A DNA stretch of 64,000 nt, taken from NCBI GenBank assembly GCA_009103225.1, contig RHPI01003599.1, positions 295,859 through 359,858 of the forward strand. Direction: 5' to 3'. Below, one piece after another: positions 3,361 through 64,000 of the stretch. This stretch comes from Chlorokybus atmophyticus (taxonomy: Eukaryota; Plantae; Mesostigma and Chlorokybus algae). Below the pieces are notes generated by a model. That model did not search any database. It worked only from the letters and a program-made list of their open reading frames with translations, and was not told the DNA's origin. Each line of letters opens with the position of its first letter. The first letter of the stretch is position 1. The translations under genes and the position numbers were made by a program.

Positions 3361-3661
3361 NNNNNNNNNNNNNNNNNNNNNNNNNNNNNNNNNNNNNNNN
3401 NNNNNNNNNNNNNNNNNNNNNNNNNNNNNNNNNNNNNNNNNNNNNNNNNNNNNNNNNNNNNNNNNNNNNNNNNNNNNNNNNNNNNNNNNNNNNNNNNNNN
3501 NNNNNNNNNNNNNNNNNNNNNNNNNNNNNNNNNNNNNNNNNNNNNNNNNNNNNNNNNNNNNNNNNNNNNNNNNNNNNNNNNNNNNNNNNNNNNNNNNNNN
3601 NNNNNNNNNNNNNNNNNNNNNNNNNNNNNNNNNNNNNNNNNNNNNNNNNNNNNNNNNNNNN
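3361..3661. other. assembly gap (N run)
   Basis: N characters. Confidence 1.
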
Positions 3662-31568: not shown

Positions 31569-31993
31569 NNNNNNNNNNNNNNNNNNNNNNNNNNNNNNNN
31601 NNNNNNNNNNNNNNNNNNNNNNNNNNNNNNNNNNNNNNNNNNNNNNNNNNNNNNNNNNNNNNNNNNNNNNNNNNNNNNNNNNNNNNNNNNNNNNNNNNNN
31701 NNNNNNNNNNNNNNNNNNNNNNNNNNNNNNNNNNNNNNNNNNNNNNNNNNNNNNNNNNNNNNNNNNNNNNNNNNNNNNNNNNNNNNNNNNNNNNNNNNNN
31801 NNNNNNNNNNNNNNNNNNNNNNNNNNNNNNNNNNNNNNNNNNNNNNNNNNNNNNNNNNNNNNNNNNNNNNNNNNNNNNNNNNNNNNNNNNNNNNNNNNNN
31901 NNNNNNNNNNNNNNNNNNNNNNNNNNNNNNNNNNNNNNNNNNNNNNNNNNNNNNNNNNNNNNNNNNNNNNNNNNNNNNNNNNNNNNNNNNNNN
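31569..31993. other. assembly gap (N run) flanked by poly-C
   Basis: N characters. Confidence 1.
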
Positions 31994-36052: not shown

Positions 36053-38002
36053 ATGGACGCTCAGCACATGCAGCATCTGTGGCATGCACTGCAAGCTAGT
36101 CAACCCACTGCTGCACCAGGTAGACTGCACTATGCTGCGTCCACGTCACCGGATGTAACCCTTGATGGCTATTGGGCGCAGCGAGCGCATGAGCTACTGC
36201 AGCACATCCCTCCCAACCCAGCCACAGGACCTCGTCTGGTGCAGGTGTGATTGCATGTGCGTGCATGCGTGCGTGCGTGCGTGTTCACGCGTATGTGTGT
36301 GTGTGTTTGTGCATGTGTGCGTGCGCGCGTGCGTGCGTGTGTGAGTGTGATTGCATATGTGTGTCTGTGTGTGTCTGTGTGTGTAAGAGTGTGATTGCAT
36401 ATGTGAGTGCGTGCGTGTATGTGCAGTATAGTGCGTGCGTGCGTCAGTGTGAGAGTGTGGTTGTACTTGTGAGTGTTTGCGTGTTTGTGTGTGTGTGAGA
36501 GTGTAATTGCAGATGTGTGTGCGAGTGTGATTGCATGCGTGCGTGCGTGCATTCAATTCATGCATCACTCAGTGGCGTGATTGTGATCTGCAAATGCCCA
36601 TCCCAGCACTCGCAATGTCTTGGCCAGACGCACGCCCCGACTCGCCGCCCAGCACCGTGCCGACTGAGCCCATCCCGGCTCAAGAGCCCCCGGCGCACAC
36701 CTAAACTGCGCCGGTGCATTGCCCAACGCCTGAGCATGTTGCGCGAAGTGCCCCTTCGAAGAAGAAGAAGGCCACGCCTGCAGCAGCAGGTACACGTGTG
36801 TGCACAGTCTGGATGAGCTTGCGTGCTGCATGCATGTGCTAGAATGTGCACGTGTGCACAGTGCGAATGTGCTTGTGTGCTGTGTTGTATGTGTGTGTAG
36901 AGTCAAGCAATTCGTGCATGTGCGTGCATGGTGATACAATAACTGTGCATGTGTGTGCACAGTCAGAATCTGCTAGCATGCATGTGTGTGCACACTCACA
37001 GCACCTGCATGCACGTGCACAGTCAGTGTTGAAATTTGTACATGTGCATGGCTAGAGGCTGTGCGCGTGCAGGTGTGTAGAATGAGAGTAGGTGCTTGCA
37101 TGACTGCCCGGCGTGTACTGTGCAGGCAAAAAGCGTGCAGGAACGTGGAGTGCAGCGGAAAGCATTTGGTTGATTGCTGCACACAAGGAGTCCCACGAGA
37201 AGTGGGCCACCGGCGTCTACCGAGCAAGCAAGAACAAGACCTTGAAGTGGAAGGAGATTGCAGCAGCTGCATCTAAGCTTGCCAGGGAAGCCAATGGGGT
37301 GTTCGAGCGCACACCCGCTCAGTGCGATGATAGGTCAACCACTTGCTGGTTGTTGTGTGCATGTGAACGTATGTATGCAGCCAGGGTTCGTGTATGTGAG
37401 TGGGTAGTGCGCCTTGCTAACATGTGCATGGGCTACAGGTGGAGCAACATGAGGTTGCAATACTATGAGATCCGTCGCTTTGCTAGGCGGTCAGGCGCAC
37501 CCGACTACTTCAGCCTTGAGGTAGATCACAAGGAGTGGGAAGTGCCCAACAACTTGCTGGGCAGCAACATCCGTATCTACGAGTTGATGGAGGACGCGTT
37601 GGGCAGCACCGCAGCTGCAGAGCCACCCACCTCTTTCACCGCCGGGGGAGGTGAGGAGCAGCCATCAAAGACTTGCCAAGGTATGTTCATGTTGTCAAGC
37701 AAGACTGCCTGCCACACTTGGCAATAGCATGCTTACGTTGTGCTATTCTAGATAAGACTGCTGGAACCACGGGTAAGAAGCGCAAGGCCAAGGTCTCTTT
37801 CATTAGTGACACGATCAACCGCTAGTGTGAGCAGCAAGAACGTATGGCAGCGGAGCGCGCCGAAAGGGAGGCAGCTGCTGAGCAGATAGAGCTAGCAGCA
37901 CTCAAGGCAGAGGGGGATAAGCAGTGCTCAGCTATCTTAAGTCTAGGAAAAATGCTGAGTGAGGCTATTATGACACTGCGTTCCGCTGAGTGCATGTTGT
38001 AG
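36053..38002 (+). pseudogene. Harbinger Myb/SANT-like (trihelix-type) DNA-binding protein
   Basis: TWSAAESIWLIAAH...KWKEIA...RTPAQCDDR|WSNMRLQYYEI..PDYFSL is a Myb_DNA-bind_4-like pattern with a coiled-coil tail. In-frame stops at 36702 (TAA) and 37823 (TAG). Confidence 0.8.
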
Positions 38003-38081
38003 CAAAATCATGCATTTTGTATCTGTAGCAGGGAACAATGATACAAGTAGGGTTAGTGTTGCAACGTGATAGCAATTCGCA

Positions 38082-39449
38082 CTACATGAATTGTTCCGCT
38101 AGTAGGTCTCTGACCAAGCTACCAGTGTTGTCTAGGTTGTCATTGTCTGCAGTAGCATGCAGGGCCATATCTCCATTAGCATCTAGCGCATAGTCTAAAG
38201 GCTCCTCCCCCGCTCTAACACAGAAGTTGTGGAGTACACAACATGCACCAATAACATTAGGCACGGACAACACGTCGCTACTGATAGTCTCCTTCAAGAT
38301 GCGCCACCTGCTTTTTAGCACCCCGAACGCTCGTTCAACAGCCATGCGTGCGGACGAGTGGCGGAAATTGAAAACACTCTGCCACTCAGGTAAAGCATCA
38401 CGCTGTCCAGGGTAGGGCACGATCAGGTGTTGAGTTAATGGGTATGCAGCATCACCGAGAATGTAAGGGGTCACACGATCACCAGAGTGAAGTGTCAGGA
38501 TGGGCTCTTGCATGATGGTCTTGTCTTGGTAGATGGATCGATACAACCCGGAATTGCTGAACACCCTTGCATCATGCACACTGCCGGGCCAGCCGATGTC
38601 GATATGGGTGAAATGCAGGTTGTAATCGACCACGGCCTGCAGCACGCATGCAGTTTTATGTACGACACAACTTGTGGCGACACAATGCATGGGTCATACT
38701 TGCATAGGTTGCATAGATAGGTACACGCTTACTTGAAGGATGATGGAGTAGCTGCCTTTGCGGTTGAAGTAATTAGCAGCGTGTGGAGTAGTCAGCTTCT
38801 TGATTATAATGTGACTGCCATTTAAAGCGCCTACGCAGCCTGGGAATCCTTTAAAGGGAGGGTAAATACCCTCCCAACGCGCCATTACTTGCCTCAAGCG
38901 CGCACGCTCCGGCCATGCTATTAAGGCACGCAGTTCTGCACTGACAACTCGCACAAATTGCTCACAAATTTAGCAAGCACTAGCAGTGCTTACGCCCATC
39001 AACTCACTTAACACATGATAAGGGGTACCATATCCAAGCCTATGCAACCCTATGGCAACCCGCTTATGCAATGGTATCGCTTCTCTAAAGCGTGTAACGG
39101 TTTTAAATAACTCAGTGTTAGATAAGGCCTGGCACAAGGCATTGAACAAAGCTGCACTCATACGAAAGTGAGTCTTCCACATAGCATCAGGCCAATGTAC
39201 AGACACGACTCTATTAAACCACGCTTGTATCCGCGGAAAGCAATACCAAATGTTGACATGCTCTCGCATCGTAGCAACAGCCGCCCATGCAGTGCTTGTG
39301 GAGTGCATGTCCTCTCCATCTGCTGGCAAGGATAGCAAACGCTGACGCCGAGCTTGGTGACTGGTCAACGCCTGCCTAATTGTGGCGATCAACGCCCCAA
39401 TGATGGCCAGTAATATGCCTCGCATTACTGCTGCTGCTGGAGCATCCAT
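38082..39449 (-). pseudogene. Harbinger DDE (DDE_Tnp_4/HARBI1-like) transposase
   Basis: FRMSAALFNAL, KRVAIGLHRLGYG, FPGCVGALNGSHI, YFNRKGSYSIILQAVVD, GWPGSVHDARVF, YILGDAAYPL, FNFRHSSARMAVERAFGVLKSRWRIL. In-frame TAA at 38970-38972 and first catalytic Asp replaced by Asn at 38820-38822. Confidence 0.93.
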
Positions 39450-45297: not shown

Positions 45298-46986
45298 TCA
45301 GCTGGCAGAAGTGTAAAGGCGGCGGACGTCCTCGAGCGTAGCGGGGGCAAGTGTGATGGGGCACCGTGAGTGCGTCTGCACGTAGGCGAATAGGCAGGGG
45401 TAGCAGAAGGCGTAGCCGGAGACGGCGCTGAGAGCGGGGTTGGTGCGTGTCCGGAGGCAAAGCGGGCAACGCGATGGGTCCGGCGGGAGTCTCACGCCAT
45501 CGGGGGCGGGTTTGGGCGCATGTGGGGGCGGGGGCACGGGCAGCACGGCGGGAGCGCCGACGCGCTCTTCCGCTCCTGAACTGTACCACCATTCCAACAC
45601 TTTGAACAGCAGCACAGACATGATCAGCGCGCTTGAGGCGTAGTCCGCCGTCGCGTGCCCGACCCTCAGCCACGCCCTCCGCAAGAACCGCCAAAGCCTC
45701 GGGCCGCTCCCGCTCACTGCCGACAACGCCCGCAACCGGAACGTTTCTTTCCTGCGCGCCGCCGCCATCTGCAAGGCGCGCACAGATCTGAACAAACATG
45801 TGTGCGCACCAACCACTGTGCGTCTTTGACGCATGCGTGACAATGCAAGGTAGATGCCAAAGCTAGTGTGGCTTACCAGTTGTTCGGCGGATGCACGAAC
45901 CACTGTGAGCCTGAGCGTATGCAGAAGCGGCGTGAAGTAGGGTGTGGCCTCCAACAGGTAAAGCAGTTGATACGCAAAGAATGCACCTGTCAACAGATGA
46001 TATGAGAAACGCTACCTTTGCAAGCAGGTCAGGTCATCACAATGCTACAGCAATGCCAGGTTCTCACCCTCGTAACCGGCATGTATCCACGGATACACAT
46101 AGCCAAACAGCCGAGCGAGGCTGCTGGGGCCAGGACCTGCTTGACTGGTCGTAGTTGAGCCCCGGCGTTGCTGGGCATCGTTGTGGTTGTTGTTGACACC
46201 GTCCTCGTCCTCGTCATCAACAGTGGTCAACCCGATGGCCGCGAGCGCGCCGCCCTGACGGGCCTGGTAAATCGCATCCAACTTTGCTTTGATGTATGGC
46301 ACTCCGACCTGCACCATTTGCAATGTCAAGGTTACTTATGACGTGCATTACGCTGATTAGTTGTATTAGTGGTAGTATTGCGTGCGTGCGTGCATGCATG
46401 CGGGCGCGCGAGTGCCCATGGGCGCACGCGCGTCATGTGTGTGTTCGCACGTGCGTATGTGCTTGAGCGCACACGCGTGCATGCATGCATGTGTGCGCCA
46501 GCTGCGTACCAGTAACAGCATAGATAACCTGCGCTGCCGAGCCGTCAAACGCGCACTCGCATTGTTTCTAGCACCGGCAGAACTCTGCACAACTCTACGA
46601 AGGCCGTATAGGTTTTCCGAAAAGGATGCATCTGCCATCCACGCAATTGATTGATCAAAACAAAGTGGTAAATACCAACAAAGTGTAATGTATGCGTGGC
46701 TGCACAACCGCAAGAGTGCTGACCACAACCATTGGCACGCGTGTAAGAAAAAAGACTTACCATTAGCGCTAAGGGAGTGTGCTTCAAGTGCCGCATGCAG
46801 GGCCGCAAACACTTCGTCCGAGTGGTTGAGCGCAAAGCCGAGGGCGCCCCCACCACCCCTCCGCGCCGCAGCGACTGCGAGCGAGTACACTGCCGCCGCT
46901 TTCACCATCGCAGGCAAGCGCTCGGCCGCAACCATCTCAAAAAATGTTGGGCGGGCGCCGTCGCCGCCCGCCACATGGAAAAACAT
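45298..46986 (-). CDS. PEX12: peroxisome biogenesis RING protein PEX12
   Basis: MFFHVAGGDGARPTFFEMVAAERLP, DASFSENLYGLRR, VPYIKAKLDAIY, YPWIHAGYEG, FFAYQLLYLL, LFKVLEWWYSS, and C-terminal RING CPLCLRTRTNPALSAVSGYAFCYPCLFAYV..CPIT. Confidence 0.93.
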
Positions 46987-47922
46987 CCTCTCTCTGCAAG
47001 GAGCAAGTGTCTGGGGTTAATGTGACGCATGGCATTGCAGGATGTTGCAAATATCTTCGCTGCCTTGGCCTGGAGTTGCTGTGTCCGTGTGTTTCACCTT
47101 CAAGACTTGTGCACGTGAAAACTTTGTAACACCTAGCAGCTGCTCTGACACGATAATGTTGTGTAGTATTGGTGGTCGTAGCTTTGGTGTGGTTGTGTTG
47201 AGTTGGCAGTTTCAGCTTAGTACTCAACGCTTGCATGTGATATGCTTGTCCGTGTGCACGTCAACCCAAACAGCAGCTTCGCGGGGTTGAGTTGGCGTGC
47301 ATGCATCGTGTAGTCTGAAGCAGCAGTCAAATCCAACCATTTGTTTGCTATGTTGAGCAAAGCACCGCCTTCCACAGTCGTTGCATCACAAAACACCTTG
47401 AGTTACAACTTGCTCGTAACACATACAAACCGGCTGCAGCAGGCTACGTTGGACAGCTGCAATTCATCGCTTTCACTAACAGTGCTGAACCTGGCTGGCT
47501 GCACTTGCATGCTGCGCCGTCAAGCACCACCGGCTGCTTGATTGTGTGCAGAACAAGCACTTACCAGCGGCAGCGTAGCGTCCCAGCTGGCCAAGCTTAT
47601 GCTGCAGCAGACAGACCAATTCGAGACTTGCTTCTGCCGCCTCCTGCCCACCTGCTTAAGCCACCACTCCTTCAGCTAGCCGCACCCAAGCGCCAGGATC
47701 GCTCACCTACACAGCTGTCACACCTACTGCTCCAAGTCCTCGTCCCCCACCTCCACCTCCTTCTCCTTTACCACCTCGTCCTGTACCTGTTTCTCCACCT
47801 CCGCCTCCTCCGCCAATTGCTCCTCCACCTCCTACACAACAACCTACTTGAGCATGCCGGCCTTATCTTTGAAGGTGTAGGCGAAGGCGGCGGGGTTGGC
47901 GTCCTGCGGGCGGGCCTCCGGC

Positions 47923-50175
47923 ATGGAGGCGGCGAGGCTGGCGGAGGCCATCGTGAAGGAGCAGCTGGGCGAGGTGGCTAGCGCTGCGTGCGGGGCGCTG
48001 CTGCGCAAGGGGGCGGGGGCGGGCCTGGCGCTGCCCGTGGTGGCCAAGGAGGCGAACCTGCCTCCCGGCCAGGCCAGGAACGCCCTGCTGGTGTTGCTTC
48101 AGCAGAACTGCGCCCAGGCCCACAGGGTAGGCGGCGGCGACACCGGGCAGCCCGCCCAGCTGGTCTACCTGGCCTGCCTGGATAGGATCCTGGGCCGCCC
48201 ACGCTTCCCCCGCTACCTACGCACCGCCGCCGACCTCCTTGGTCCCCAGGCCGAGGCGGTCGTCGAGGGACTGCTGGAGCACGGCAGACTCACACTGCCT
48301 CAGCTCACGCAGCGAGCTGCCGCCCGAGACAAGCCTGGTGGGTGCGCATGGCATTGATCACATGCATGCTGCTGGTGTTGTTCAGGTGTGTGTAACTTCT
48401 GACTTATGCTTTTTAAGGAACACGATAGCGGGATCAGTTGACCAAGTGCATGCACTGGTATCTGTTAAATAACTTGTAAAGTGATTGATTACCCAAAGGC
48501 AGTCCTGTTACAGTAGGTATAATTCATATACCTGTGACAGGGTGATAGCACTATTGTGCGCATGCAGCCAAACCTTTGGTCTGCAAGTCAGTGTCGGTAC
48601 TCTATGAACGTTCTCAAGGCACAGATGGTATGCATGATGCCAACCCAAAAACTGTATATATTATGTACACTGCATGCATCGCACTGGGTACGGTATGCAA
48701 GGAGCACCGCACGGTGTCTCAATTGCATGGCACACTCGTGCATGCAGTATGTGCGTTTACAATTCTGATTGCATTGTTGCAATGCCCTATTGCTTAACAG
48801 GTGCAGAAACTTCAGACGCCACAGACAAAGTCAAGCCCGCGCTCCGCCAGCTGTTGGAAAGGCGATTGGTGGAGCGAGCGCCACCGCCTGAGCTGCCCTT
48901 CCCTTCATTCACTTCAAAGGCAGCACCTGTGCGAGGCCGATCCAAGGTGTGTTGTGTATGTTGGTTACATGTTGTCATCCCTTCATTCAGCCTCATGACA
49001 TGCCCTTTGACTCAAACTTAGACTCCAGATCCAGCGACTGCCGCAGCGGAAGCAGCAAAGACTGAGGCGCGGCAGCGCTATGCACAAATACGGTTTCGCC
49101 AACTGGATGGTCTGGAAGATGAGCCGACATCTCCTCCAGCAAAGAAGGTGCATTGCATTTGATTTCATCATTGTCTGATAGCAACAATCACCACCACAAC
49201 AACATCACAGAGACACAACAGCATAACAACAACATCAAAAACCCATGGATGCTTCTTGTGCAGCGGCGTATAGGGGCAGCTGCTGGTGCGGTGACTGGAT
49301 CCGAAGCTGAGGTGTTGTGGCGAGTCAACACGGAGGAGTTCGACCGCATCTTGAAGCACGAGGCTTGCGTGGAGTACGTGTCTTCTCGCTTTGGTGGCGC
49401 TGCTGCAGCCCTGTGCTCGGCTCTACTCGCGCAATCAAGAAAGTTTGAAGCACCCGTTCCGGAGGTCATGTCTCTTACATGGTCTTTGGACCTGCTTGTT
49501 GAGGCCGTTCAGAGTGGCAGCGGGGTCGTCACGCACACGCGCATGACAGAGTCTCAAGCCTCTGCACTGTTGCGCCAGATGGAGAATGATATCGATGCTC
49601 CCGTTGTTACAACGGTTGACCCCATCGCTCCATCCTTTGCTGTTCGAATACAGGGCGTGTTGGGTCGCATCCGTGATAATGAGGTTGAGGCGGTCGTTCG
49701 AGGGCGCTTTGGCACGCCGGCTTGCAGGATCTACCGGTTGTTGGTGCGGCGGCGATTGTTGGAGCAGAAACAGATTGCCGAGATGTCGATGCTGCCAGTG
49801 AAAGACGCGCGTGAGCTGCTCTACCGGCTGCTGCGCGAGAGGTACCTCAGCTTGCAGGAGGTGGCGAGGACGGCGGACCACGCGCCCGCGCGCACGTTCT
49901 ACCTATGGCGCGCGGACGCGAGCGCCGCGTGCGAGCTCGCGACGCAGCAGGTGCACAGGACGGCGTACAACGTCCGCGAGCGACTCCACTTTGAGCTGCA
50001 GCAGGAGCAGGAGGTGCTGGACCTGCTCGAAGCGCAAGCTGCCTCCGCCACAGGAGTGACCATCACCGCAGCTCAACGCCTGCAGCTGGAACGTGTGCGG
50101 CGCGTGGCAGCTGTGCTCGAGAGCTCAATGCTGGCACTGGACCGCCAGCTGATGCTGCTCACAGCGGAGTCCTGA
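47923..50175 (+). CDS. POLR3C: RNA polymerase III subunit RPC3 (RPC62/RPC82)
   Basis: Exons 47923-48337, 48801-48946, 49022-49147 and 49264-50175 total 1599 nt (532 aa plus stop). Motifs include LLVLLQQN, RPRFPRYL, LLEHGRLT, LWRVNTEEFDR, RFGTPACRIYRLL, LEQKQIAEMSMLPVKDARELLYRL and QEVARTADHAPARTFYLW. Confidence 0.93.
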
Positions 50176-52782
50176 ACCTGTTCAACCACATCACCCCCGG
50201 CTCTTTACGCCGCAGTGCAAGCCACCAGAGGGGCGAGCTCAGGTTTGGCCTCAATGGGTTGGACTGCATTTGTACTCTGATTTAACCCGCGTGACAGACT
50301 CTTCGCATGCATGTAGGTACATGGATAGTGTCAAGCTCATCATATAACTGGGACAGCATGCCTCCGGTTGTTGGCCGTGACACGCGGGCTTTCTTCCCTT
50401 CAACTCCCTGTTTGAGCTTGTGTGAGCGCCGCAAGAGCATGCTTCGACGGTATGCTACGTATTATGTGAGCTGAACGTTGTGATACTGGATGTATCAACC
50501 AGCTGTCAGTCAAGTAGGGTTGGTTGCAGGGGGGCTTGTTTGTTGCTGAGGTATGTTAGTGTAAGCGATACTGAGTTGAAACCAGCTGTACAAGTACTGC
50601 GAGCTGTACTAGTACAGCAATGTACTGCATGAAATCGTGTAAGAGCAACACTTTGTCGTGAACATGTCTGTCATCAGACCACAGACGCTCCAGAACATAA
50701 TATTACCTCTTCCGGGGTGAGAGAGTCCGGGCCTGGATTTAACACATTGTTACCAGCGAGCAACAACAACAAGCGCACCAATATACGTAGTAGTGTAGGT
50801 AGGGGTAGTAAGAGGTTGGGCAGCAATCGCACCAGAGCAGCTGATGCACACGTAGTTAGGGTCTGAGAGCATGACAAAGTTGCATTGTATGATGAGCAAG
50901 AGAGTAAACATGCTGACATGCCCAATTGGAGAAGGCACATGGACGCAGTTCCTTTAGTCAACAGCTGCATCGCCCAACACACCCCTAAGTGCCCAATCCT
51001 AGGATGAGCATGGTCCGGGCAAGTGCCGTTCACTTGCAGTCCGGCCACGGATGGGAGAGGCGACAACGGACATGGTGGCTGACATAGCGAGTACCTCGGA
51101 CAGCGGAGCAGTGAGGGCGAACCTTTGGCACCCGGCCGCCAACGCTGGGCTTCTCTCCTCCTCCTCCTCCCCCCCCGGCCCCCCCCCCCTTCTCCTCCTT
51201 CCCGCAGGGCCTCCCTTTCTGGAGCGTGCGGCAGCGGCAGTAGCGGCCGCGCCCGGGTGAGGGCTGTAGCAGGCAGCGATACCGACTGCTGAGGCGGACG
51301 CAGCGCTAATGGAAACGTTGTGACGTGCTGGCCGCGTTGTACTTAGCGTGTGATGCTTGTATGTTGGTGTATATGTGAACGTGCAGTGTGTAGGATGCTG
51401 CGTGTGTAGGCATGCACGTCAGCCGCTGGGGCCTTGCTGTATGCTACTGTAATATATATATATATAGAGAGAGAGAGAGAGTTCTCCTCCTTGCATACAA
51501 GCAAGTATGGCACATGCCCTGCCATTGCTTGCAATGTGTGCATCGGGTTGCGGTACATGCAATCCTATGAGCCGCGTGTGCGGTCGCGCAGCGCATGACG
51601 TACCCATTACCCTTCACATTGAGGGACAACACGCTTTCAGCATGCGAGAGCGTGTGTGCAGAAGACCTAAGGTATATATGTGTGGGAGAGCGCGAATGCA
51701 CACGTGTTAGGGACCATGCCTCCTTATGTTACATTGGAACCATAGGCATATCAATGTTGGCAGGTGGAAACGCGTGAAAACAAAACTAGACAAAAGAACC
51801 AAAGTATACCTTGCAGAATTGGAGAAAACAAGTGCCGAACGTCATATGACAAACTACTCTGACGGCTTCGGCCATACTTGGGGTCCTTCCCATGCCGACG
51901 TTCCTCGAGGGCGATTCTGTGTAAATTTTTTAAAGTCGGCCATTGTGGCTTTCATCTTTTCTACTTCATCGCTTACCCGATTGACGTCCTGAGCACACAC
52001 CTTTGATCAGAAGTGTAACAACAATAACACGGCCTATGTCAATCGCAAACGCAACACTCACAGCGCGCATCGGAAAGATAATTGCTGCCGCTACAGCGCC
52101 CGGCAAATTGCCCTGCAGGAGTTTCTTGACATTGAGAGTGTGTCTCACAGGCGGCGGCGGAGGCATACGCAAGGGAGGAGGGGACCCCAGCGGATGGCCT
52201 CCGCAGCCGCCCACCACACCGCCATCAACCATCGCCCCGCCCCGCCCCGCCCGGCTTCCACCCCAAACCCCCCGTCCAATGGCGTACCTTGGGTATCAGG
52301 ATCCGCCTTTGCTATGCTGCAGCGGCGAAGGCGTACACCAAACCAGCGGACCGAAATCCTCAGGCTACCTTTGTCAGCTGGAACTGAGTTGTTGGAGTGA
52401 GCTGAACGCAGGCGGAACTTGAATGCTGCGCCATCAAGCAGCCGGCTTCCGGCTTGTCAGCGTGCAGGCTAAGCACGCTGACAGCGGAGCGTCCAAAGCC
52501 GCCGAGCTTACGCTGCAATAGACAGCAATGCCGACTTAGCTCGCTCCTGCTGCTTTCCTTCCCACCTGCTTGAGCCACCACTCCTACAGCTAGCTGCCTC
52601 CCAGCGCCGGGCTCTAACACCAACAGAGCTGCCACCGCTCAACATCTGCTCGCGCACCCCCTCCACCACAATCTCCACCTCCTCCACCACCTCCGCCGCC
52701 GCCGCCTCCAACCCGTAGATCCTACACAACAGCCAGCGTGGGCATGCTAGTGTTGTCCTGTAAGCGGGCCTCCTCCTCGGCA

Positions 52783-55106
52783 ATGGTGGCGGCGAGGCTG
52801 GCGGAGGCCATCGTGAAGGAGCAGCTGGGTGACCCGCTGCGTGCGGTGCTGCTGCGCAAGAGTGCCGGTGCTGGCCTGGCGCTGCCTGTGGTGGCCAAGG
52901 AGGCGCCAGGCGAGGCTAGGCTAGGAACGCCCTGCTGGTGCTGCTTCAGCAGAAATGCGCTCAGGTCCACGGGGTAGGCGGCGGCGTCAGTGGGCAGCCG
53001 GCCCAGCTGGTCTACCTGGCCTGTCTGGACAGGATCCTTGGCCGCCCACGCTCCCCATGCTACCTACGCACCGCCGCCGATCTCCTCGGACCCCAGGCCG
53101 AAGCGGTCGTCGAGCGCCTTCTGGAGCACGGCCGACTCACACTGCCTCAGCTCACGCAGCGAGCTGCCGCCCGAGTCAAGCCTGGTGGGTGCGCATGGCA
53201 ATTGCATGCATGCGCTGTGCATGCCGTTGGTTTTGAGCAGGTTTGTCACTTGACTGCTGCCTGCTAGACATGACGCAGCGGCGTACATTGTTCAGTTGAT
53301 TGAATGGTTGCACCATGGTGTTGTTCGACTTGTAAGCTGTCATACACAATGCTTGTCGTTAACTGCTTACTCTAGTTACTGCTTGGAGTTAACATGGTGT
53401 TGTCATAATGTTGCCAAAATGTTGGTTGCAAACAAAGCTTCAGTCTGCAAGTCAGCTTCGATATCTTCACTGGACATGTCTATGGCACAATTTGGCATGC
53501 TTGTTGCATACACTCACTGCAGTGAACAAGCTCTTGCGTACCATACAAGAAGCCATGTTTGCATGGCATTTGAGTTGCACGGCATTTGAGTTGCACATAC
53601 TTGTCATGCAGTACCTGTTTACAATACTGTTGCATTGTTGCGTTATATTACCCTTAAACAGGTGCAGACACTTCAGACGCCACGGATAAAGTCAAGCCCG
53701 CACTGCGACAGCTGTTGGAAAGGCGATTGGTGGAGCGAGCGCCACCGCCTGAGCTGCCCTTCCCTTCACTTCAAATGCAGCACCTGTGCGATGTCGATCC
53801 AAGGTGTGTTGTGTATGTAGGTTACTTGTTGTACAAACCTTCCGTTCAGCTTCATGATATGCCCTTTGACTCTAACTTAGACTCCAGATCCAGCGACTGC
53901 CGCAACTGAAGCAGCAACGACTGAGGCGCGGCAGCGCTATGCACATATACGGTTTCGCCAACCAGATGGCCTGGAAGATGAGCCGACATCTCCTCCAGCA
54001 AAGAAAGTGAGTTGCCTTACTTGCTGGTGTTGTCAACTGGCGTTTATACACTATGGTTTTAACAACACCACAACATTACAAAACTATCACAACAACACGA
54101 ACCGATGGATGCTTTGCGCAGCGGCGTATAGGGGCAGCTGCTGGTGCGGTGACTGGATCCAAAGCTGAGGTGTTGTGGCGAGTCAACACGGAGGAGTTTG
54201 ACCGCATCTTGAAGCACAAAGCGTGCGTGGAATACGTGTCTTCTCGCTTCGGTGGCGCCGCTGCAGCCCTGTGCTCGGCTCTACTCGCGCAATCAAGAAA
54301 GTTTGAAGCACCCGTTCCGGAGGTCATGTCTCTGACATGGTCTTTGGACCTTCTTGTTGAAGCTGTTCAGAGCGGCAGTGGCGGTGTCACGCACACGCGC
54401 ATGACAGAGTCTCAAGCCTCTGCGCTGTTACGCCAGATGGAAAATGATATCGATGCTCTCGTTGTTACAACTGTCGACCCAATTGCTCCATCCTTTGCTG
54501 ATCGAATACAGGGCGTGTTGGGTCGCATCCGTAATAATGGGGTTGAGGCCGTCGTGCGAGGGCGCTTCAGCATGCCGGCTTGCAGAATCTATCGATTGTT
54601 GGTGCGGAGGCGATTGTTGGAGCAGAAACAGATCGCCGAGATGTCGATGCTGCCGGTGAAACACGCGCGTGAGCTGCTCTACCGGCTGCTGCGCGAGAGA
54701 TACCTCAGCTTGCAGGAGGTGGCGAGGACGGCGGACCACGCGCCCGCGCGCATGTTCTACCTATGGCGCGCGGATGCGAGTGCCGCATGCGAGCTTGCAA
54801 CACAGCAGGTTTGAGCATGTGTGCGCGTGCGCGTGTGCGTCGTTACGTGTCCGTTGTGTATAAGCAGTGTATCCTTCTCAGGTGCACAGGACAGCGTACA
54901 ACGTCCGCGAGTGACTCCGCTTCGAGCTGCAGCAGGAGCAGGAGGTGCTGGACCTGCTCAAATCGCAAGCCGCCTCTGCCACGGGCGTGACCATCACCGC
55001 GGCTCAGTGCTTGCAGCTCAAACGCGTTCGGCGAGTGGCAGCTGTGCTCGAGAGCTCAATGCTGGCACTTGACCGCCAGCTGATGCTGCTCACAGCGGAG
55101 TCGTGA
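52783..55106 (+). pseudogene. POLR3C: POLR3C duplicate, disabled
   Basis: Collinear with the intact copy but has frameshifting indels in exon 1 (~52905-52945), a 4-bp deletion in exon 2 (~53765) and CGA>TGA at 54912. Confidence 0.92.
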
Positions 55107-56134
55107 AAGCTTTTCAACTACATCCCCGCCCGCTCATGCCGCAGTGCAAGCCACCAGAGGGGCGCGCTCAGGTCTGGTCTTAATGGGGTGGACTGACAGT
55201 TGTGTTGTTATAACTGCATACATGACAATAAACGACCGCGTGACAGACTCTTTGCATGTAGGTACATGGACAGTATCAAGCTGATCATACGACTGGGACA
55301 GCATGCCTCCGGTCATGGGCTGTGACACGCGGGCTTTCTTCCTATCAACCCCCTGTTTGAGCTCGTGTGAGCGCCGCAACAGCATGCTTCGATGGTATGC
55401 AAAGTAATATGTGAGCCGAACGTTGTCATACTGGATGTATCAACCAGCTGTCAGTACGGTTGGTCGCAAGGGGGCTTGTTTTTTGTCCCGTGTGTCACTG
55501 TGATTGACACTGAGTCAAAACCAGCTGTATAAATACTGCGAGCTGTACTAGTACTACAATGTACGTGAAATCTAGTGAAAGTGAGCAACACTTCGGGGTG
55601 AACAATTTTGTCGTCAAGCCACACACGCTCCAGTGCATAATCTTAGCTCTTGCGGGGTGAGAGAGTCCGGGCCTGGGTTCAATACCATGTCACCAGCGAG
55701 CGACAACGACAAGCGCACCAGTATATGTAGAAGTGTATAGAGCGCTGATTGTGAGTGTACGTAGGGGCAGCAAGAGGTAGGGCGGCGATCGCACCAGAGC
55801 AGCTGATGCACATATAGTAAGGTTTGAGAGCATGACAAAGTTGCATTATGACATGTGCAAGAGTATAAAGATGCTGACATGCCCAATTGGAGAAGGCACA
55901 TGGACGCAGTTCTTTTGGTCACCAGCTGCTTAGCCCAACACACCCCTAAGCGCCCAATCCTAGGATGGGCATGTGCGGGGCAAGTGCCGTTCATTCACTC
56001 CAGTTTGGCCACGGATGGGAGAGGCGACAACGGACATGGTGGCTGACATAGCGAGTACCTCGTATAGCGGAGCAGTGAGGGCGAACCTTTGGCACCCGGC
56101 CGCCAACGCTGGGCTTCTCTCCCCCCCCGCCCCC

Positions 56135-56242
56135 NNNNNNNNNNNNNNNNNNNNNNNNNNNNNNNNNNNNNNNNNNNNNNNNNNNNNNNNNNNNNNNNNN
56201 NNNNNNNNNNNNNNNNNNNNNNNNNNNNNNNNNNNNNNNNNN
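56135..56242. other. assembly gap (N run)
   Basis: N characters. Confidence 1.
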
Positions 56243-57976
56243 CCTCTCTTTCTCCTCCTTGCCTACAAGCAAGTGTGGCACATGCGCTGCGTAGAGCTCT
56301 CACCATGGGCCCTGCCATTGCGATGTGTGCATGGGGTTGCGGTACATGCAAACGTGTGAGCTGCATGCGCGCCCGTGCCACGCATGGCGTACCCCTTACC
56401 CTTCACATCAAGGGACAACACGCTTTCAGCATGAGAGCGTGTGTGCGGAAGACCTAAAGTTTATATGTGTGGGAGCGAGTGCATGCGTGTTGAAAACCAT
56501 GCTTCCTTATGTTACATTGGAACCATAGGCATGTCAATGTTGGCAGGTGGACACACGTGAAAATACAACTCCACAGAAGAACCAACGTACACCTTGCACA
56601 ATTGGAGCAAACAAGTGCCGAATGTAATACAACAAATTACTCTGGCGGCTTGGGGTTGGGGCACACGTTCCTTGAGGGCGATCCTGCGTAAAATCTCTCA
56701 ATCTTTCATCAGCTTCACTTCATCGCATATATCCGTTTGACGCCCTGAGCACCTTTGGTCAGATCCAAGTTCATCACATCGCTGCGCAGGACAGCAGCTG
56801 CTTGTGCAGGGCAGGCGGCGGCGCTTCAGCTGGCGACACACAGACAGCGAAGGGCCTGAAAGAAGGTAAGGTAGGCCTAGCGGGAAGTGAAGCAGCGCTT
56901 CCTGTTGAGCGAGTGTGTGCTTGCCGTCTGCGGCCTGAAGCTTTCGTGTTTGTGCTGCGCGAGTGTTACCTTGCTGCCTGAGTCAACGTCTCGTCTTATG
57001 CCGGCGCACGTCGTCGGTGTTGCCGTTGCATGCAGCGCCATGATTATGTCCATCACGTCACAGCAAGCCGCCCTCATTACCCCATTGCCAATTGTCCATC
57101 AACACAATCATCCCTCCCACACTCACCACGCCTCACTGGTTGATGTCCACATGCAGTTGCGTGTGCATTGCTCGCTGATGCATTGCGTGCATAGCCTAGC
57201 CTCTAGCACTGGCTGGCGTCCTTTTTTTTGCAAAACTTCCCACCTCCCTTCCTCTACCTATTTGTTGTTTAGCCGCATCCGCTTCCGACCTTGGGTGTCT
57301 GCTTGGCTGCTTTGCCCTCCTGCCCTCTGCTGCTCTCACTATCTCCATCCTGGCGTCAAGCACCAGCACCTTCACCTCCCATCGCCTGCCACTTCCCACC
57401 TGTCTAGCTCCCTGCAATTGAATCACTGCAAAACAGCAACGCGCACCTGTTCACGAGCAGGTGTCGGCACCTGCTTTGGAGCTGCTTGCAACCGCCGAGC
57501 GCTATGCATTGTCCTGTCAAGCAGAGCTGCTGACAACTGGTATGCATGCACGCGTTATGGATCTGTCCAGCAATATGCTTTTCAAAACCACCAAGACTGG
57601 GTCCACCATGATATGCATGGTGGTCCACACAGTTCGGTGCTGCATCGTCTTGTCAGCTTGCTACTATCCCGTATTGTGGGCATGGCCCCAGCTGCTTGAT
57701 TACGATCAGCAAGTTGTTAGTGGCTGCAGACGTGCCCGAATAGCTACGCATGTCGGCGCGCATCAACTTGTGCATCATCATGTCGTTGCAGGCCAAAAGC
57801 AACGTAATGGCGCTGGCTGGGATCATGCTGCCATCATTGTACATGTCTGGTGCTGCTGCCCTCGTTCATGCACGCGTCAGCTTGGGTCATAGGTGTGTGT
57901 GCACACACCAAGCGGATGACATCTCACCAATGGCAGTTACGCTCCTGAAAAGCCCCCATGGCTTGTTGATGGCAGC

Positions 57977-59529
57977 ATGCCTTCACCCCGCAACAAAATT
58001 GGTTGCCATTCAGGGCAGTGCAGCGCAGGCTTTGGCACCTACCATCTGCACCCGCCCCATCTCAGCAGCTTTCTCGAGAATGTTCGAGTGTAGTGGTGCG
58101 GGCGGATGCATCGTCGCCGCAACGCAGGTATCATCTGGGCTACTGTTTGTTATTTTCACGATGGTAGCAGCAAGTGCATCTTCAACAAGAGACATGCAGG
58201 TGCAGGGGTGCTAAAGTGGTGTTATGGGTCAAGCGACAGTGGCCACCGCGTCCCGTTCAGCCCGCTGTTAAGATTGCTGTCTTTGATTATGAGACGGTCA
58301 CCGATGTCTGCGCCACTGCTAAGAAAGGGCATGCTCTGGACAAGTACGATGTTATATTGCTCGAGGTACGTATCAACTGTCCTTGCATGTGATGGCGTGG
58401 CTAGAACCTCAGCATTCGTGTTGCCAGGCCTATGACGATCAGGAGCAACTTTTGCTGAACACAACAACGGTCCAAGAGCTCCTGCATCGAGGTTTGTAGC
58501 GCATGCGCACGCAACGCGTGAGACATTGCTTACCATGCGCGTCAGTAGTAGATGTGTTGATGTTTTGGGTTGGCATGCAGATCTGGGTAGCCGGGAGCGT
58601 CCAGTGTTGGTGAAGGGACCAGAGACTCCCTCCAAAGCAGTGCGCATCTGGGATGCCCAGTCAGGATTGCGTCTGGTTATGATGTTTTCGCAAGACGACT
58701 TGGTTAGATATCTCCGGCTGCAAGGCTGGAGTGGGTTGATTGACTTGGATACAGAGCCGACCGATATAGAAGTAAGTGATTTCGACATGCTGGAGCCTAC
58801 CAAAACCTACCGCGGCGCAAATGTTGGCATTGAACTTATGCTTAGTGCGCAAAGAGTGCAGCAGCTTGTGGCTTACACGCGGGGGAAGCAACACGCATCC
58901 GCAACAGCTGTGTATACGGGAACCGCACATCTGGCGCGCGTCACCCAAGCCACCATTGTTGGAGACAAGGTTGCCTACCGTGCTGTCCTACAAAGAAGCC
59001 ATTCAGAATTTGACGGACTTGCCTTGCTTGAGGGTTTTGCACACCCTCGTTTCAGTCATGTTACTACCGCTCTCGTCGCCTATGCGGAGAACCTGGACTA
59101 TGGCAGAGAAAAGGATGTGATTGATTTCCATAAGAAAGTCGCCCTACTCGAACAGCAACTCCGGCATGCTCCCGAACAAATCCAATTCGTGACAGTGAGT
59201 TTCTTGATGGTCGACTCGTTTGTCTGGATGGTTCTCATCATACTGATCGTTGGCAACTTCTCTGTCACAGGAAGACAACCATGCGCACTACAATGCGCAG
59301 CATATCGTACGTACTGCGATTGACTGCAATGCACATGTTGGTGAGTTGTGTTGTGTGCCTTGCAGTTGCAGGAGCTGTGAAATGAGAACTAACAAGCACT
59401 TACCCATTTGTTACAGTACCATTCTTCAGAGCGCCATGGCTGCACCCAGACATTGTGCGCAACCGCGTGCATAAGGAGTTTGGGGTGCTTCTCTCCACAG
59501 TTGGTGTTGGTGAGACCCCCGTTTTGTGA
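57977..59529 (+). pseudogene. uncharacterised Crinkler-like (Ubl header plus putative REase fold) protein, copy A; exon 1 frameshifted
   Basis: Exons 57977-58127, 58206-58365, 58428-58491, 58581-59194, 59271-59340 and 59417-59529. Exons 2-6 join in frame and end at TGA 59527-59529. Exon 1 has a 7-bp deletion relative to copy B. Confidence 0.65.
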
Positions 59530-61539
59530 TGCTGCTTCCGCTAGCTGGGTCCTTACGTGTGCCTCTTGGCTTCTTACTGAATGTTGCCATGTAAGAGAGG
59601 CTGAGCTGGACATATGCGAACTGCTGTACGTCTCTGGTAAAGGGTTTTGGGTTCGTGCATTGTGCACTCACTGCATGGAACATGTAAAGCACATGAAACA
59701 ATCATGCACGCTTGAATGGCTGTACAGGTTGCTGAGCAGACGCATAACGTTGACAGCCTCCGAGCCCCGCTAGCATGTGCGCACGCGCAAGGGCTAGCTG
59801 AGGAGGGAGTGGGAGGCTGTCGACCATTGTGACTATTGCTGCTGTAGACGTGGACTGATGACACGTTGTGCGTGTGAAGTAGCTGCGTGTGCATGCAGGC
59901 ATGCCCAACACTCTGATGGTTGGGCAGTTTGAGGCATGGGGTCAGCGTGCAGAAACTTGGCTGAGTGCGGTGGTTGTGCACAGGGCATAACTCTTCCTGG
60001 TAGACATCACGCACTCATGCACTCACAAGCAGGCAGGGAAACACAGCAACATCCTCCTGGTTTGATGAGAATCGCCAAGACTGAACGCCCTTGTTGAAGG
60101 CCGTCACCATTGCCATTGATATCACCCTTTAGCATTGTGAAGTGGTCGGGTGCTGCTATCAATGTGGGAGACGGTGAACTACAGAGATCGCACCCGCGCT
60201 ACTTGGCATCAATGGCGTGAGCCTGCAACATGTGCGTACATGGCATGAAAAGCATTATTGGTAGTGGCAATGAAGCTTCCTAAAATGTTCGCCCAGAGTC
60301 AATCAGGATCACTCTTGCTTGTTGAGTTTATTGTATAACATGATGCAAAGCAGCAGCAGTTACGGTGTTGTGTACCCTGTTACATGAGGATGGTCAACAG
60401 TCTGGGGTTGGCATGCTTGGCACCAAATGTAGAAACAGTTTGAAAACGGAGAGGCTCGGCCAGCAGTGTTACAGAAACAACACACGCAAGTTGCGGGGAG
60501 GGGGGACACAAATCTTTGCATTGCCTTCTCACTTGCTTGGGCGAGCTTTCTCAACGCAGTAGTTGGCACTCCAACACTAAGCATGCTTCCAACACCATCT
60601 ACAACATAGTTCTTGCTATGGAAATTCACATGCTGCGTTGGGGAGCGGTAGGTTATCATTGCCCTATGCCCTATGCCCTCGTTACCACCAACTTGCTCCC
60701 ATCAGCAGCAGCAGCCCTGTACTGCAAACCTGCTTGTATGTACGTGCGTGATGGACTGGACTGGACCCTTCACTTGCTTCAGAGCGGTGCGGTGGAAGCT
60801 CTCGAGACGAGTCATCAGTCTTTGGCACATGCGCTCTCGACTTGCGTGTGGTGAGACAGAAATTCTGTCACCTTCCATACTGACAGGCAATCTGGGTGCT
60901 GTTCGCTGCGAAAGACAGACAGACACACGCACACACACACCAACATAATACGCATCATTGGACTGCATTGCCCTGTCCATGGATCAACACAGAGTTGCAT
61001 GGATGTCTGCATGTGTTGCATCGCATTGTGTTGTGTCTTGACCACGCGATGTGGGAAGGGCAGGACGTCGTGCGCAGGCTCCATCATCAGCAGCTTTCCT
61101 TCTGCTTTGACTACCTGACCTGTCGTGGGCGGGGGAGGGTTCGCCCTTGTGGTCCACCACACCATCGTGGAGGTGAGGAGCAGCTTGGCGCTGACTTCGT
61201 CTCTGTCGCTGTCGTCAAGGCCGTTGCCGCCCTTGTGGGCGTGCGACGTGACGGCGGCAAAGTAGTGTAGTAGGTGCTCTGCGCTAGAGCACCACCAGCG
61301 GGCAGAAGCCCATGAGGCACGCCGGCTGCTCCGGCCTGGGCTTTCATCAACGGCCAAGCCCCTCCTCGCCGCCGCTTGAGCAAGACACCGCCAGGCCAGG
61401 GGCGGGACCAGGCAGACCACCGAGAGACTCGTTGGGCTGCTTCACACTCTGCTAACTAAGGGTGGGCTCAGAAGACCCCCCGGGTCAGCAGGACGCCCTA
61501 CCCTCCCACCCGACGGCCCGACACCCATCCTTCCTGCCC

Positions 61540-61940
61540 TCTCTGTCGACGGCACACGCTCACGGTTTGTCTCGCGCACAAGCACGCTCTGTTTTGTCAC
61601 ACACGCATGCACAAGCGTTTTCTGCCTCACGCGCTCGCACACATTGCGCACGCTCTGTTTGTAACACGCGCACGCCATGCCGCACGCGCATGCATGCACA
61701 GGCATAGGCATAGGCACATGCACACGCACAAAAGCACAGGCACAAACGTTTTCTGCCTCACACGCTCAGGGTTTGTCGCACGCACTGGCGCGCGCGCATG
61801 TGCATGCATGCATGCATGTGCCCACGCATACGCACGCACGTGCGCGCCTGAGCGAGAGAAGGTCACACGCAACCTCCATCGCACGCATGCGCGCCCATGT
61901 GCACACGCGCACAGACGCGCGCGCGCTCTCAGCTAAGCGG
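61540..61940. repeat. degenerate CA/GC-rich minisatellite
   Basis: Recurrent units such as CACGCTCTGTTT(T)GT(C/A)AC and CGTTTTCTGCCTCAC. Confidence 0.6.
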
Positions 61941-62624
61941 CGCTGCTCCAGGGTGACGTCGATGCAATCGCCGTTTTGTCTCCCTCCCTCTCTTGCACGT
62001 GTCTTCGCTCGGGCTCGTCTCTCATGCACGTACGCATAACTCAGCTCGCACAATGCAATGACATGTGCACCTGTTCATGAGCAGGTGTCGGCACCTTTGG
62101 AGCTGCTTGCAACCGCCGAGCGCTTTTCAATGCCCTGCCTCAAGCAGAGCTGCTGACAACTGGTATGCATGCACGCGTTGTGGATCTGTCCGGCAATATG
62201 CTTCTCAAAAGAACCAAGACTTGGTCCACCGTGATACGCATGGTGGTCCACACAGTTCGGTGCTGCTTCGTCTTGTCAGCTTGCTACTATCCCGAAATGT
62301 GGGTATCGTGCGCATGGCCCCATCTGCTTGAATACGATCAACAAGTGGCTGCAGATGTGCCTGCCTGAATGGCATAGCATGTATTCTACACATGTCGGCG
62401 CGCATCAACTTGTGCATCATCATGTCGTTGCAGGCCAGAAACAACGTGATGGCGCTGGCTGGGATCATGCTGCCATCATTGAACATGTCTGGTGCTGCTG
62501 CCCTCGTGCACGCACGCGTCAGCTTGAGTCACAGGTGTGTGTGCACACCAAAACAGATGACATCTTGTCAAACCACTCGCAGTTACGCTCCTGAAAACCT
62601 CGGCATGGTTTTGTTGATGGCAGC

Positions 62625-63980
62625 ATGCCTTCACCCCGCAACAAAAGTGGCGGTCGGTTGCCATTCAGGGCAGTGCAGCGCAGGCTTTGGCACCTACCAT
62701 CTGCACCCGCCCCATCTCGAGAACATTGGAGTGTAGTGGTGAGAACATATGCATCGTCGCCGCAACGCAGGTATGTGAGCTACCGTTTGTTATCTTCATG
62801 TTGGTAGCAGCGAGTGCATCTTCAACAAAAGGCGTGCGGCTGCAGGGGTGCACAAGTGGTGTTATGGGTCAAGCGGCAGTGGCCCCCGCGTCCCGTTCAG
62901 CCCGCTGTTAAGATTGCTGTCTTTGACTATGAGACGGTCACCGATGTCTGCGCCACTGCTAAGAAAGGGCATGCTTTGGACAAGTACGATGAAATATTGC
63001 TCGAGGTATGTACCAGTTTTCCTTGCATGCGATGGTCAAAATTTCAGCATTCGTGCTGCCAGGCCTATGACGATCAGGAGAAACTGTTGCTGCACACAAC
63101 AGTGGTTCAAGAGCTCCTGGAGCGAGGTTAGCAGGGCATGCGCATGTGAGACATGCACACCTTGTGCGTCAGCTTCAGCTTCAGATGTTGGTTTGCATGC
63201 AGGTTTGGGCAGAGAGGATCGTCCACTGCTGATCAAGGGCCCGGAGACTCCCATGAAAGCAGTGCGAATCTGGGACGAACGGTGGGGACTGCGTCTGGTC
63301 TTGATGTTTTCGCAGGACGACTTGGATAGATATCTTGACGTGCAAGGGTGGGTTGGGTTGATAGACTTGGATACAGTCGACCCGCCCACCGTGGAGACTG
63401 ATTTCGACATGTTGGAGCCTACCAAAACCTACAGCGGCGCGAATTTTGGCTCTGAACCGCTGCTTGGTGCGCAGCGAGTGCAGCAGCACGTGTATTACAC
63501 ACGAGGGAAGCGACGCGCACCCGCAACAGCTGTGCATGCGGGAATTGCACGTCTGGCGCGCGTCACACAAGCCACCATTGTTGGAGACAAGGTTGCCTAC
63601 CGTGCTATCCTTCGCAGAGGCGGTTTACGGTTGGCAGAATACGACGGACTTGCCTTACTTGAGAGATTTGTACACCCTCGTTTCAGTCATGTCTCTGCCG
63701 CTCTCGTCGCCTACGAGGAGAACCGTGACTATGGCGGAGGACAAGATCTAGTTGAGTTCTACACGAACATCGCTGTACGCAATGAGCAACTCCGGCTGCC
63801 TCCCGAAGTTCAGTTTACAACAGTAAGTCTCTTGATTGTCAACTCTGAGTGTGTCTGCATGGTTCTCAGTATACTAAAGCTTTTGGGCTATGACAACTTA
63901 TTTGTTACAGGAGGACAAGGATGCGCACTATGATGCGGAACATGTTGTACGTAGTGCGATCGAGCGTGGTGCACATGTTG
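62625..63980 (+). CDS. uncharacterised Crinkler-like protein, copy B (last exon beyond window), predicted ~390 aa with mitochondrial-type presequence
   Basis: Exons 62625-62770, 62846-63005, 63063-63126, 63203-63822 and 63911-63980 all join in frame with GT-AG borders conserved in copy A. Domain names are inference. Confidence 0.75.
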
Positions 63981-64000
63981 GTGAGTTGTGATGTGCCTTG

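Follow-up and report, generated by a model that had tools for sequence, protein, structure and literature searches.

A tandemly duplicated, Chlorokybus-restricted gene family with a probable pair of beta-grasp modules and a drifting C-terminal domain

The stretch of DNA analysed here, referred to as the window, comprises 64,000 nucleotides of the genome of the alga Chlorokybus atmophyticus (assembly GCA_009103225.1, contig RHPI01003599.1, positions 295,859 to 359,858 of the forward strand). Towards its right-hand end the window carries two intron-containing orphan genes, both on the plus strand, which are the subject of this analysis. They lie in a direct tandem duplication, in which positions 57443-59355 align with positions 62067-63995 over 1976 columns at 81.8% nucleotide identity, and the likeness of the two genes is far above chance. 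The duplicated units are spaced approximately 4.63 kb apart, measured from start to start, and a third copy was not found within the 64-kb window. When the main exon was used as the query of a word search, copy 1 proved to be the Joint Genome Institute (JGI) model Chlat1/8116, a protein of 487 residues (hereafter P0001), with 100% identity. Copy 2 corresponds to the JGI model Chlat1/8117, a protein of 455 residues (P0002), and both models are placed on the JGI scaffold Chrsp75. The spliced proteins that we analysed were these two public models; the remaining sequence was searched exon by exon. An earlier note on this DNA, made from the letters alone, had described two tandem paralogues with introns and without a housekeeping identity, and this description is borne out.

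Mapping of the JGI models was exact and placed GT-AG introns of 57-90 nucleotides between the exons of both copies. Copy 1 opens with the upstream part of the duplicated unit (57443-57976), which starts at the duplication boundary, contains stretches that serve as 5' exons in the JGI models and gave no match to Pfam. This is followed by the counterpart of a basic leader exon (57977-58126), with a donor GT at 58127. Exon A (58206-58365, with bounds set by homology to copy 2; 58234-58365 in the JGI model) and exon B (58428-58491) encode the first part and the middle of a first small module, module 1. Exon C (58581-59194), which is 100% identical to P0001, encodes the last strand of module 1, the whole of a second module, a linker and the core of the C-terminal domain. 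Exon D (59271-59340) contributes a helix of the C-terminal domain, and the last exon (59417-59526) ends in the gene's stop codon, which extends it to 59529.

In copy 2, the upstream part of the unit spans 62067-62623, and P0002 puts two 5' exons there (62198-62298 and 62439-62534). The leader exon (62624-62770), with an ATG at 62625, encodes a basic, acid-poor peptide rich in Ser, Ala and Pro. Exon A (62846-63005) shares 95-98% nucleotide identity with its counterpart in copy 1. As mapped from the JGI model, exon B follows at 63063-63126, exon C at 63203-63822 (with module 2 at approximately 63256-63441 and the core of the C-terminal domain at approximately 63523-63822) and exon D at 63911-63979, while the last exon of this copy lies past base 64000, outside the window. 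Translation from the ATG at 62625 yields 389 residues, in line with the product of about 390 residues that had been predicted. All of the peptides quoted in that prediction are present in the plus-strand translation of copy 2, and variant forms of them in copy 1; the layout in three modules that was read from them is real.

Judged from the sequence, both copies are real genes, at least from module 1 onwards. The main exon (exon C, 204-206 codons) differs between the copies at 117 of 603 aligned nucleotides (19%) and contains stops in neither, for which a neutral simulation returned a P of about 0.02. All five length differences between the copies in this exon are multiples of three. When copy 1 was compared with copy 2 by the Nei-Gojobori method, the overall ratio of nonsynonymous to synonymous substitution rates (dN/dS) was 0.47. 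By region the ratio was 0.13 in exon A, 0.34 in module 2, 0.44 in the linker, 0.74 in the C-terminal domain and 0.33 in exon D, and in part of the C-terminal domain it was near 1. Constraint is hence weakest in the C-terminal domain. Because constraint declines from the exon of module 1 to this domain, selection is preserving the part made up of modules 1 and 2, which we refer to below as the beta-grasp part.

For three reasons, copy 1 has an uncertain or degenerate 5' end. The open reading frame (ORF) that begins at the ATG at 57977, the start used in the earlier note, closes ahead of the donor site of that exon. The leader exons of the two copies differ by one length difference, which is not a multiple of three. 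In the JGI model of copy 1 the frame is a different one and the acceptor, at 58234, lies further on, whereby the first strand of module 1 is left out, and ahead of module 1 the JGI models of the two copies are in different frames. The 5' annotation of P0001 moreover looks chimeric. Its first three small exons were drawn from 56305-57294; the first of these (56305-56341) falls within a neighbouring RPC82 duplication, in its second copy (52775-56651), and the other two are located in the short stretch directly after this duplicate.

The frame used by P0002 produces a basic leader with an aromatic/Pro-Arg-Arg element at its end, just ahead of the first strand of module 1. Similar leaders are found in two distant paralogues described below, P0003 and P0005, which favours the P0002 frame. 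In the leader exon of copy 2, nine Arg and Lys residues stand against a single Asp or Glu among 48 residues, a composition resembling that of transit peptides, and the leaders of P0002, P0003 and P0005 contain 13-17 Arg and Lys versus 2-4 Asp and Glu residues. Module 1, the candidate ubiquitin-like (Ubl) module, sits behind a basic leader of 30-136 residues.

The upstream blocks of the two units (57475-57926 and 62096-62567) are 90-97% identical, as compared to 65-93% in the main exon, and contain open frames on both strands in both copies. At this level of identity, open frames in the stretch are no guide to coding status. The peptide at approximately 57470-57520 has what we take to be a BTB-like look, without Pfam support. 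Synonymous divergence amounts to approximately 0.15 in the 5' exons versus 0.38 in the main exon. Since synonymous divergence is lower and the upstream identity higher than in the main exon, the comparison suggests that the 5' half of the genes was homogenised through gene conversion after the duplication.

The earlier note had proposed a count of the copies in the whole genome, and this count stands at five annotated members on four scaffolds, all in Chlorokybus. A profile search with HMMER against 1.84 billion representative proteins of all lengths returned four matches, namely P0002, P0003, P0004 and P0005. The latter three lie on other Chlorokybus scaffolds (Chrsp187, Chrsp109 and Chrsp99), share 23-36% identity and display the same module order or shortened versions of it: P0003 is without module 2, P0005 is without the C-terminal domain, and P0004 is short at both ends. 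That three such divergent paralogues have the same module order implies long-term maintenance of the family.

Outside Chlorokybus, no relatives were found among the 1.84 billion representatives or among 5.8 billion clusters. Word searches, for which exon C, the five-member profile and the P0003 domains served as queries, retrieved family members only, and neither the JGI metagenome contigs nor IMG/VR revealed any relatives when scanned at the DNA level. Each exon and all five members were searched against Pfam-A without a match at E ≤ 10. NCBIfam, PADLOC and PHROGs gave no match either, and sequence and profile searches of the PDB produced chance-level matches only. An origin of the family from a giant virus or a transposon was dropped from consideration, as no match was found. 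The searchable literature contains no mention of the gene identifiers of the family.

To describe the modules we turned to structure prediction. The AlphaFold models, for which no more than five family sequences were at hand, had a mean predicted local distance difference test score (pLDDT) of 38 when the whole of P0002 was modelled and of 48 when the model was limited to copy 2's exon C. Module 2 is the sole moderately confident stretch (pLDDT 54-72), with secondary-structure elements in the order beta-beta-alpha-beta-beta. In Foldseek searches, its best match was the CIDE-N domain of FSP27 (probability 0.99, template modelling (TM) score 0.55 on the target, 20% identity), followed by CIDE-A (probability 0.96) and then by PB1, DCX, UBX and SUMO structures; a search of BFVD gave no match. 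The CIDE-N and PB1 domains (FSP27/CIDE-C, CIDE-A and the PB1 domain of MAP2K5) share with module 2 the order of elements and a length of about 65-80 residues, and as a group they are its best structural matches (probability 0.84-0.99, TM score 0.42-0.57 on the target, 14-21% identity). None of these matches is significant, and unlike these domains module 2 stands next to a candidate second beta-grasp in tandem and ahead of a domain of unassigned fold. A beta-grasp topology of module 2 is moderately supported by the model, as a call of fold class and not as an assignment to a family. The earlier note had listed this part as a second small alpha+beta module, and the evidence for a beta-grasp is better here than in module 1.

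Module 1 had been read as the Ubl header. Its predicted order is beta-alpha-beta-beta-3/10-beta, with the first strand unpredicted, at a pLDDT of 37-47, and the whole P0002 model gave weak Foldseek matches to ISG15, to di-ubiquitin and to F0-F1 of the talin head over 130-157 columns. A beta-grasp fold of module 1 is what we infer from this model, and the protein would then probably contain two tandem beta-grasp modules. A ubiquitin-like reading of the header is plausible at this low confidence. The predicted pair of consecutive small beta-grasp-like modules is what the orphan family has in common with the tandem-Ubl proteins ISG15, linear di-ubiquitin and talin F0-F1. It lacks, however, both a C-terminal Gly-Gly motif for conjugation and any sequence similarity to these proteins, and its two modules show no detectable homology to each other.

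The C-terminal domain displays the order alpha-beta-beta-beta-alpha-beta in both models, at a pLDDT of 35-52. Four members of the five-member alignment possess the domain, and in three of them one predicted strand begins with an Asp, for which P0004 has His; the end of the next strand carries a site for an acidic-x-basic triplet. The resulting motif is the canonical D...ExK in P0003 only, where the Asp and the triplet are 24 residues apart; it reads D...ExR in copy 2, D...ExL in copy 1 and H...DxR in P0004. The register 'ExN' given in the earlier note is probably one residue out. For a PD-(D/E)xK restriction-endonuclease (REase) fold, which had been proposed for this domain, only the order of elements and the D...acidic-x-basic motif speak: no REase was present among the Foldseek matches of the two low-confidence models and no profile matched. 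With the PD-(D/E)xK superfamily the domain would share the predicted order of elements and the placement of the Asp and the triplet on the strands. In contrast to that superfamily, it is without a structural or sequence match, and Lys takes the basic position in P0003 only, with Arg there in copy 2 as well as in P0004, and Leu in copy 1. The check by AlphaFold and Foldseek that had been suggested thus recovered the beta-grasp order, at moderate confidence in module 2 and low confidence in module 1, and returned no nuclease structure. Because constraint is weakest in the C-terminal domain and its motif differs between the two window copies, a degenerate or non-catalytic domain fits the sequences better than an active toxin; the domain may be a pseudo-nuclease.

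The two genes are thus duplicated, under coding constraint, restricted to one lineage and without the signature of any known family. In this respect they belong to an ordinary lineage-specific orphan family, one of many, which is not surprising. Our best explanation, to which we give a probability of roughly 45%, is that the window pair is a local tandem duplicate within a Chlorokybus-restricted family that combines a conserved interaction core of tandem beta-grasp modules with a drifting C-terminal domain, possibly derived from a nuclease, and that local duplication and partial gene conversion gave the pair its present form. The protein would consist of a basic, acid-poor leader, two beta-grasp modules, the second of them nearest to CIDE-N and PB1, a short linker and a C-terminal alpha/beta domain. 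The beta-grasp pair would be the conserved working part, a protein-protein interaction unit which might pair with partners or paralogues in the style of CIDE-N and PB1 domains. As for the C-terminal domain with its fast drift, we would take it for a nuclease-like module that is degenerate or has no enzymatic role, and not for an active toxin.

Several results weigh against this explanation. Both structure models are poor overall, and the fold calls lean on the order of secondary-structure elements and on a single stretch of moderate confidence. None of the Foldseek matches reached E ≤ 0.001, the best E value being 0.03. The sequence profiles of ubiquitin, CIDE-N and PB1 gave no Pfam match at E ≤ 10, and hhalign comparisons among the three modules showed no internal homology, including that of module 1 to module 2. 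The interaction function is drawn from the fold class alone. Finally, the high dN/dS of the C-terminal domain is equally compatible with diversifying selection on an active conflict domain.

The leader lends itself to another explanation, in which it would be a mitochondrial or plastid transit peptide and the protein an organelle-targeted nucleic-acid factor, a degenerate nuclease-like binder of organellar DNA or RNA with beta-grasp adaptors. From its composition, the leader may indeed direct the protein to an organelle: Arg-rich, nearly acid-free and Ser/Ala/Pro-rich leaders occur in three members, a conserved aromatic-Arg-Arg element precedes module 1, and the C-terminal motif is nuclease-like yet mostly degenerate. 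However, the 5' ends are the least reliable parts of the gene models, and the JGI frames differ there. RAP, PPR, OPR or other signatures of organellar factors were not detected by Pfam in any of the members, and the mature parts are acidic in four of the five (isoelectric point (pI) 5.4-6.1), whereas only P0003 is basic (pI 9.3); proteins that bind nucleic acids are not usually acidic. We therefore regard an organellar factor as unlikely. Still more doubtful in our view is that the open frames are functionless artefacts of annotation in a recently duplicated, decaying segment. The missing relatives outside the species, the disrupted leader exon of copy 1, JGI 5' exons that begin inside the RPC82 duplicate, a dN/dS near 1 in part of the C-terminal domain and the poor AlphaFold confidence speak for spurious genes. 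Such genes would hardly account for a main exon of 204-206 codons that has stayed open in both copies at 19% nucleotide divergence and through five in-frame length differences, for the dN/dS of 0.13-0.34 in the beta-grasp modules, or for three paralogues on other scaffolds that keep the module order at 23-36% identity.

The earlier note had by inference placed the pair in the Crinkler-RHS-type (CR) class, as tandemly expanded conflict proteins in which a Ubl delivery header precedes a toxin or pseudo-toxin of REase fold. Shuffling is what defines CR modules, and conflict domains are often fast-evolving. In the present family, the genome contains divergent relatives at scattered sites besides the tandem paralogues, module 1 is possibly a beta-grasp, the C-terminal domain evolves fast (dN/dS 0.74) and has the alpha-beta-beta-beta-alpha-beta order in both models, and the D...ExK motif is intact in P0003. 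Reviews describe a layout of Ubl header and REase modules for CR proteins, including those of free-living eukaryotes (PMC5289972, PMC12957317). As in the CR effectors, in the definition of Zhang et al. (2016) that PMC5289972 summarises, the orphan family of this free-living eukaryote is modular and tandem, with a candidate Ubl-like module ahead of a variable C-terminal domain that may carry a nuclease-like motif. It differs from them in that the Ubl module is not N-terminal but follows the basic leader, in that no header or toxin profile was matched, and in that the modules are confined to the family. Of four defining features tested, three were not found (an N-terminal header, a recognised toxin class and shuffled, shared modules). 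The fourth, tandem expansion, amounts to two tandem copies in a window that ends at 64000, together with three dispersed distant paralogues. Furthermore, none of the five members matched Pfam-A at E ≤ 10 or had a credible sequence match in the PDB, no REase appeared among the Foldseek matches, no other protein among the 1.84 billion representatives had the header or toxin modules in common with the family, the array within the window holds just two copies, and the motif is non-canonical in both of them. Membership of the CR class, for a family confined to a single species and without a recognised toxin domain, is not upheld by these results and appears to us rather improbable. Least probable of all would be a self-contained nuclease-control set, comparable by convergence to DFF40/DFF45 (CAD/ICAD) of animals, or a CR-type branch that has escaped recognition. 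P0003, basic and with an intact D...ExK, would in that case be an active nuclease, and the acidic paralogues with degenerate motifs, the window genes among them, would pair through their CIDE-N-like modules and restrain or direct it.

As to the surroundings of the orphan genes, the ORFs in the spacer between the copies (59574-61417) gave no Pfam match. The spacer ahead of copy 2 (61400-62050) is of low complexity and CA/GC-rich, and Tandem Repeats Finder reported only one weak array of a 12-nucleotide unit there (61693-61744). A second tandem duplication is adjacent to that of the orphan genes (47915-51868 and 52775-56651, 84-88% nucleotide identity, spacing approximately 4.86 kb) and contains the RNA polymerase III gene RPC82/POLR3C. 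An ORF for the POLR3C winged-helix domain is kept in both RPC82 copies (49153-50172 and 54053-54811), the second being shorter. Further upstream, a Harbinger-type transposon or its remnant occupies 37113-38687, where the minus strand encodes a DDE_Tnp_4 transposase (38082-38687, E 7e-32) and the plus strand has an adjoining ORF for a Myb/SANT-like DNA-binding protein (37113-37724). The minus-strand ORF at 45298-45990 has weak matches to Pex2/Pex12 and to a C3HC4 RING domain, all of them under the Pfam cut-offs, and possibly belongs to a peroxin gene as one of its exons. Assembly gaps, seen as runs of N, total 835 bases in the window (3361-3661, 31315, 31569-31993 and 56135-56242), and the last of these lies just upstream of the orphan-gene locus.

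The main practical value of the analysis is a correction of the public annotation, as both models look unreliable towards their 5' ends and that of copy 1 is without the first strand of module 1. Chlorokybus is at the base of the streptophytes, as their earliest-diverging lineage, and families restricted to it bear on the inventions and losses that took place before plants reached land. If the combination of a beta-grasp pair with a nuclease-like tail is true, the family would represent a compact, unclassified architecture, and this free-living alga would possibly possess in it a system for conflict or for regulation.

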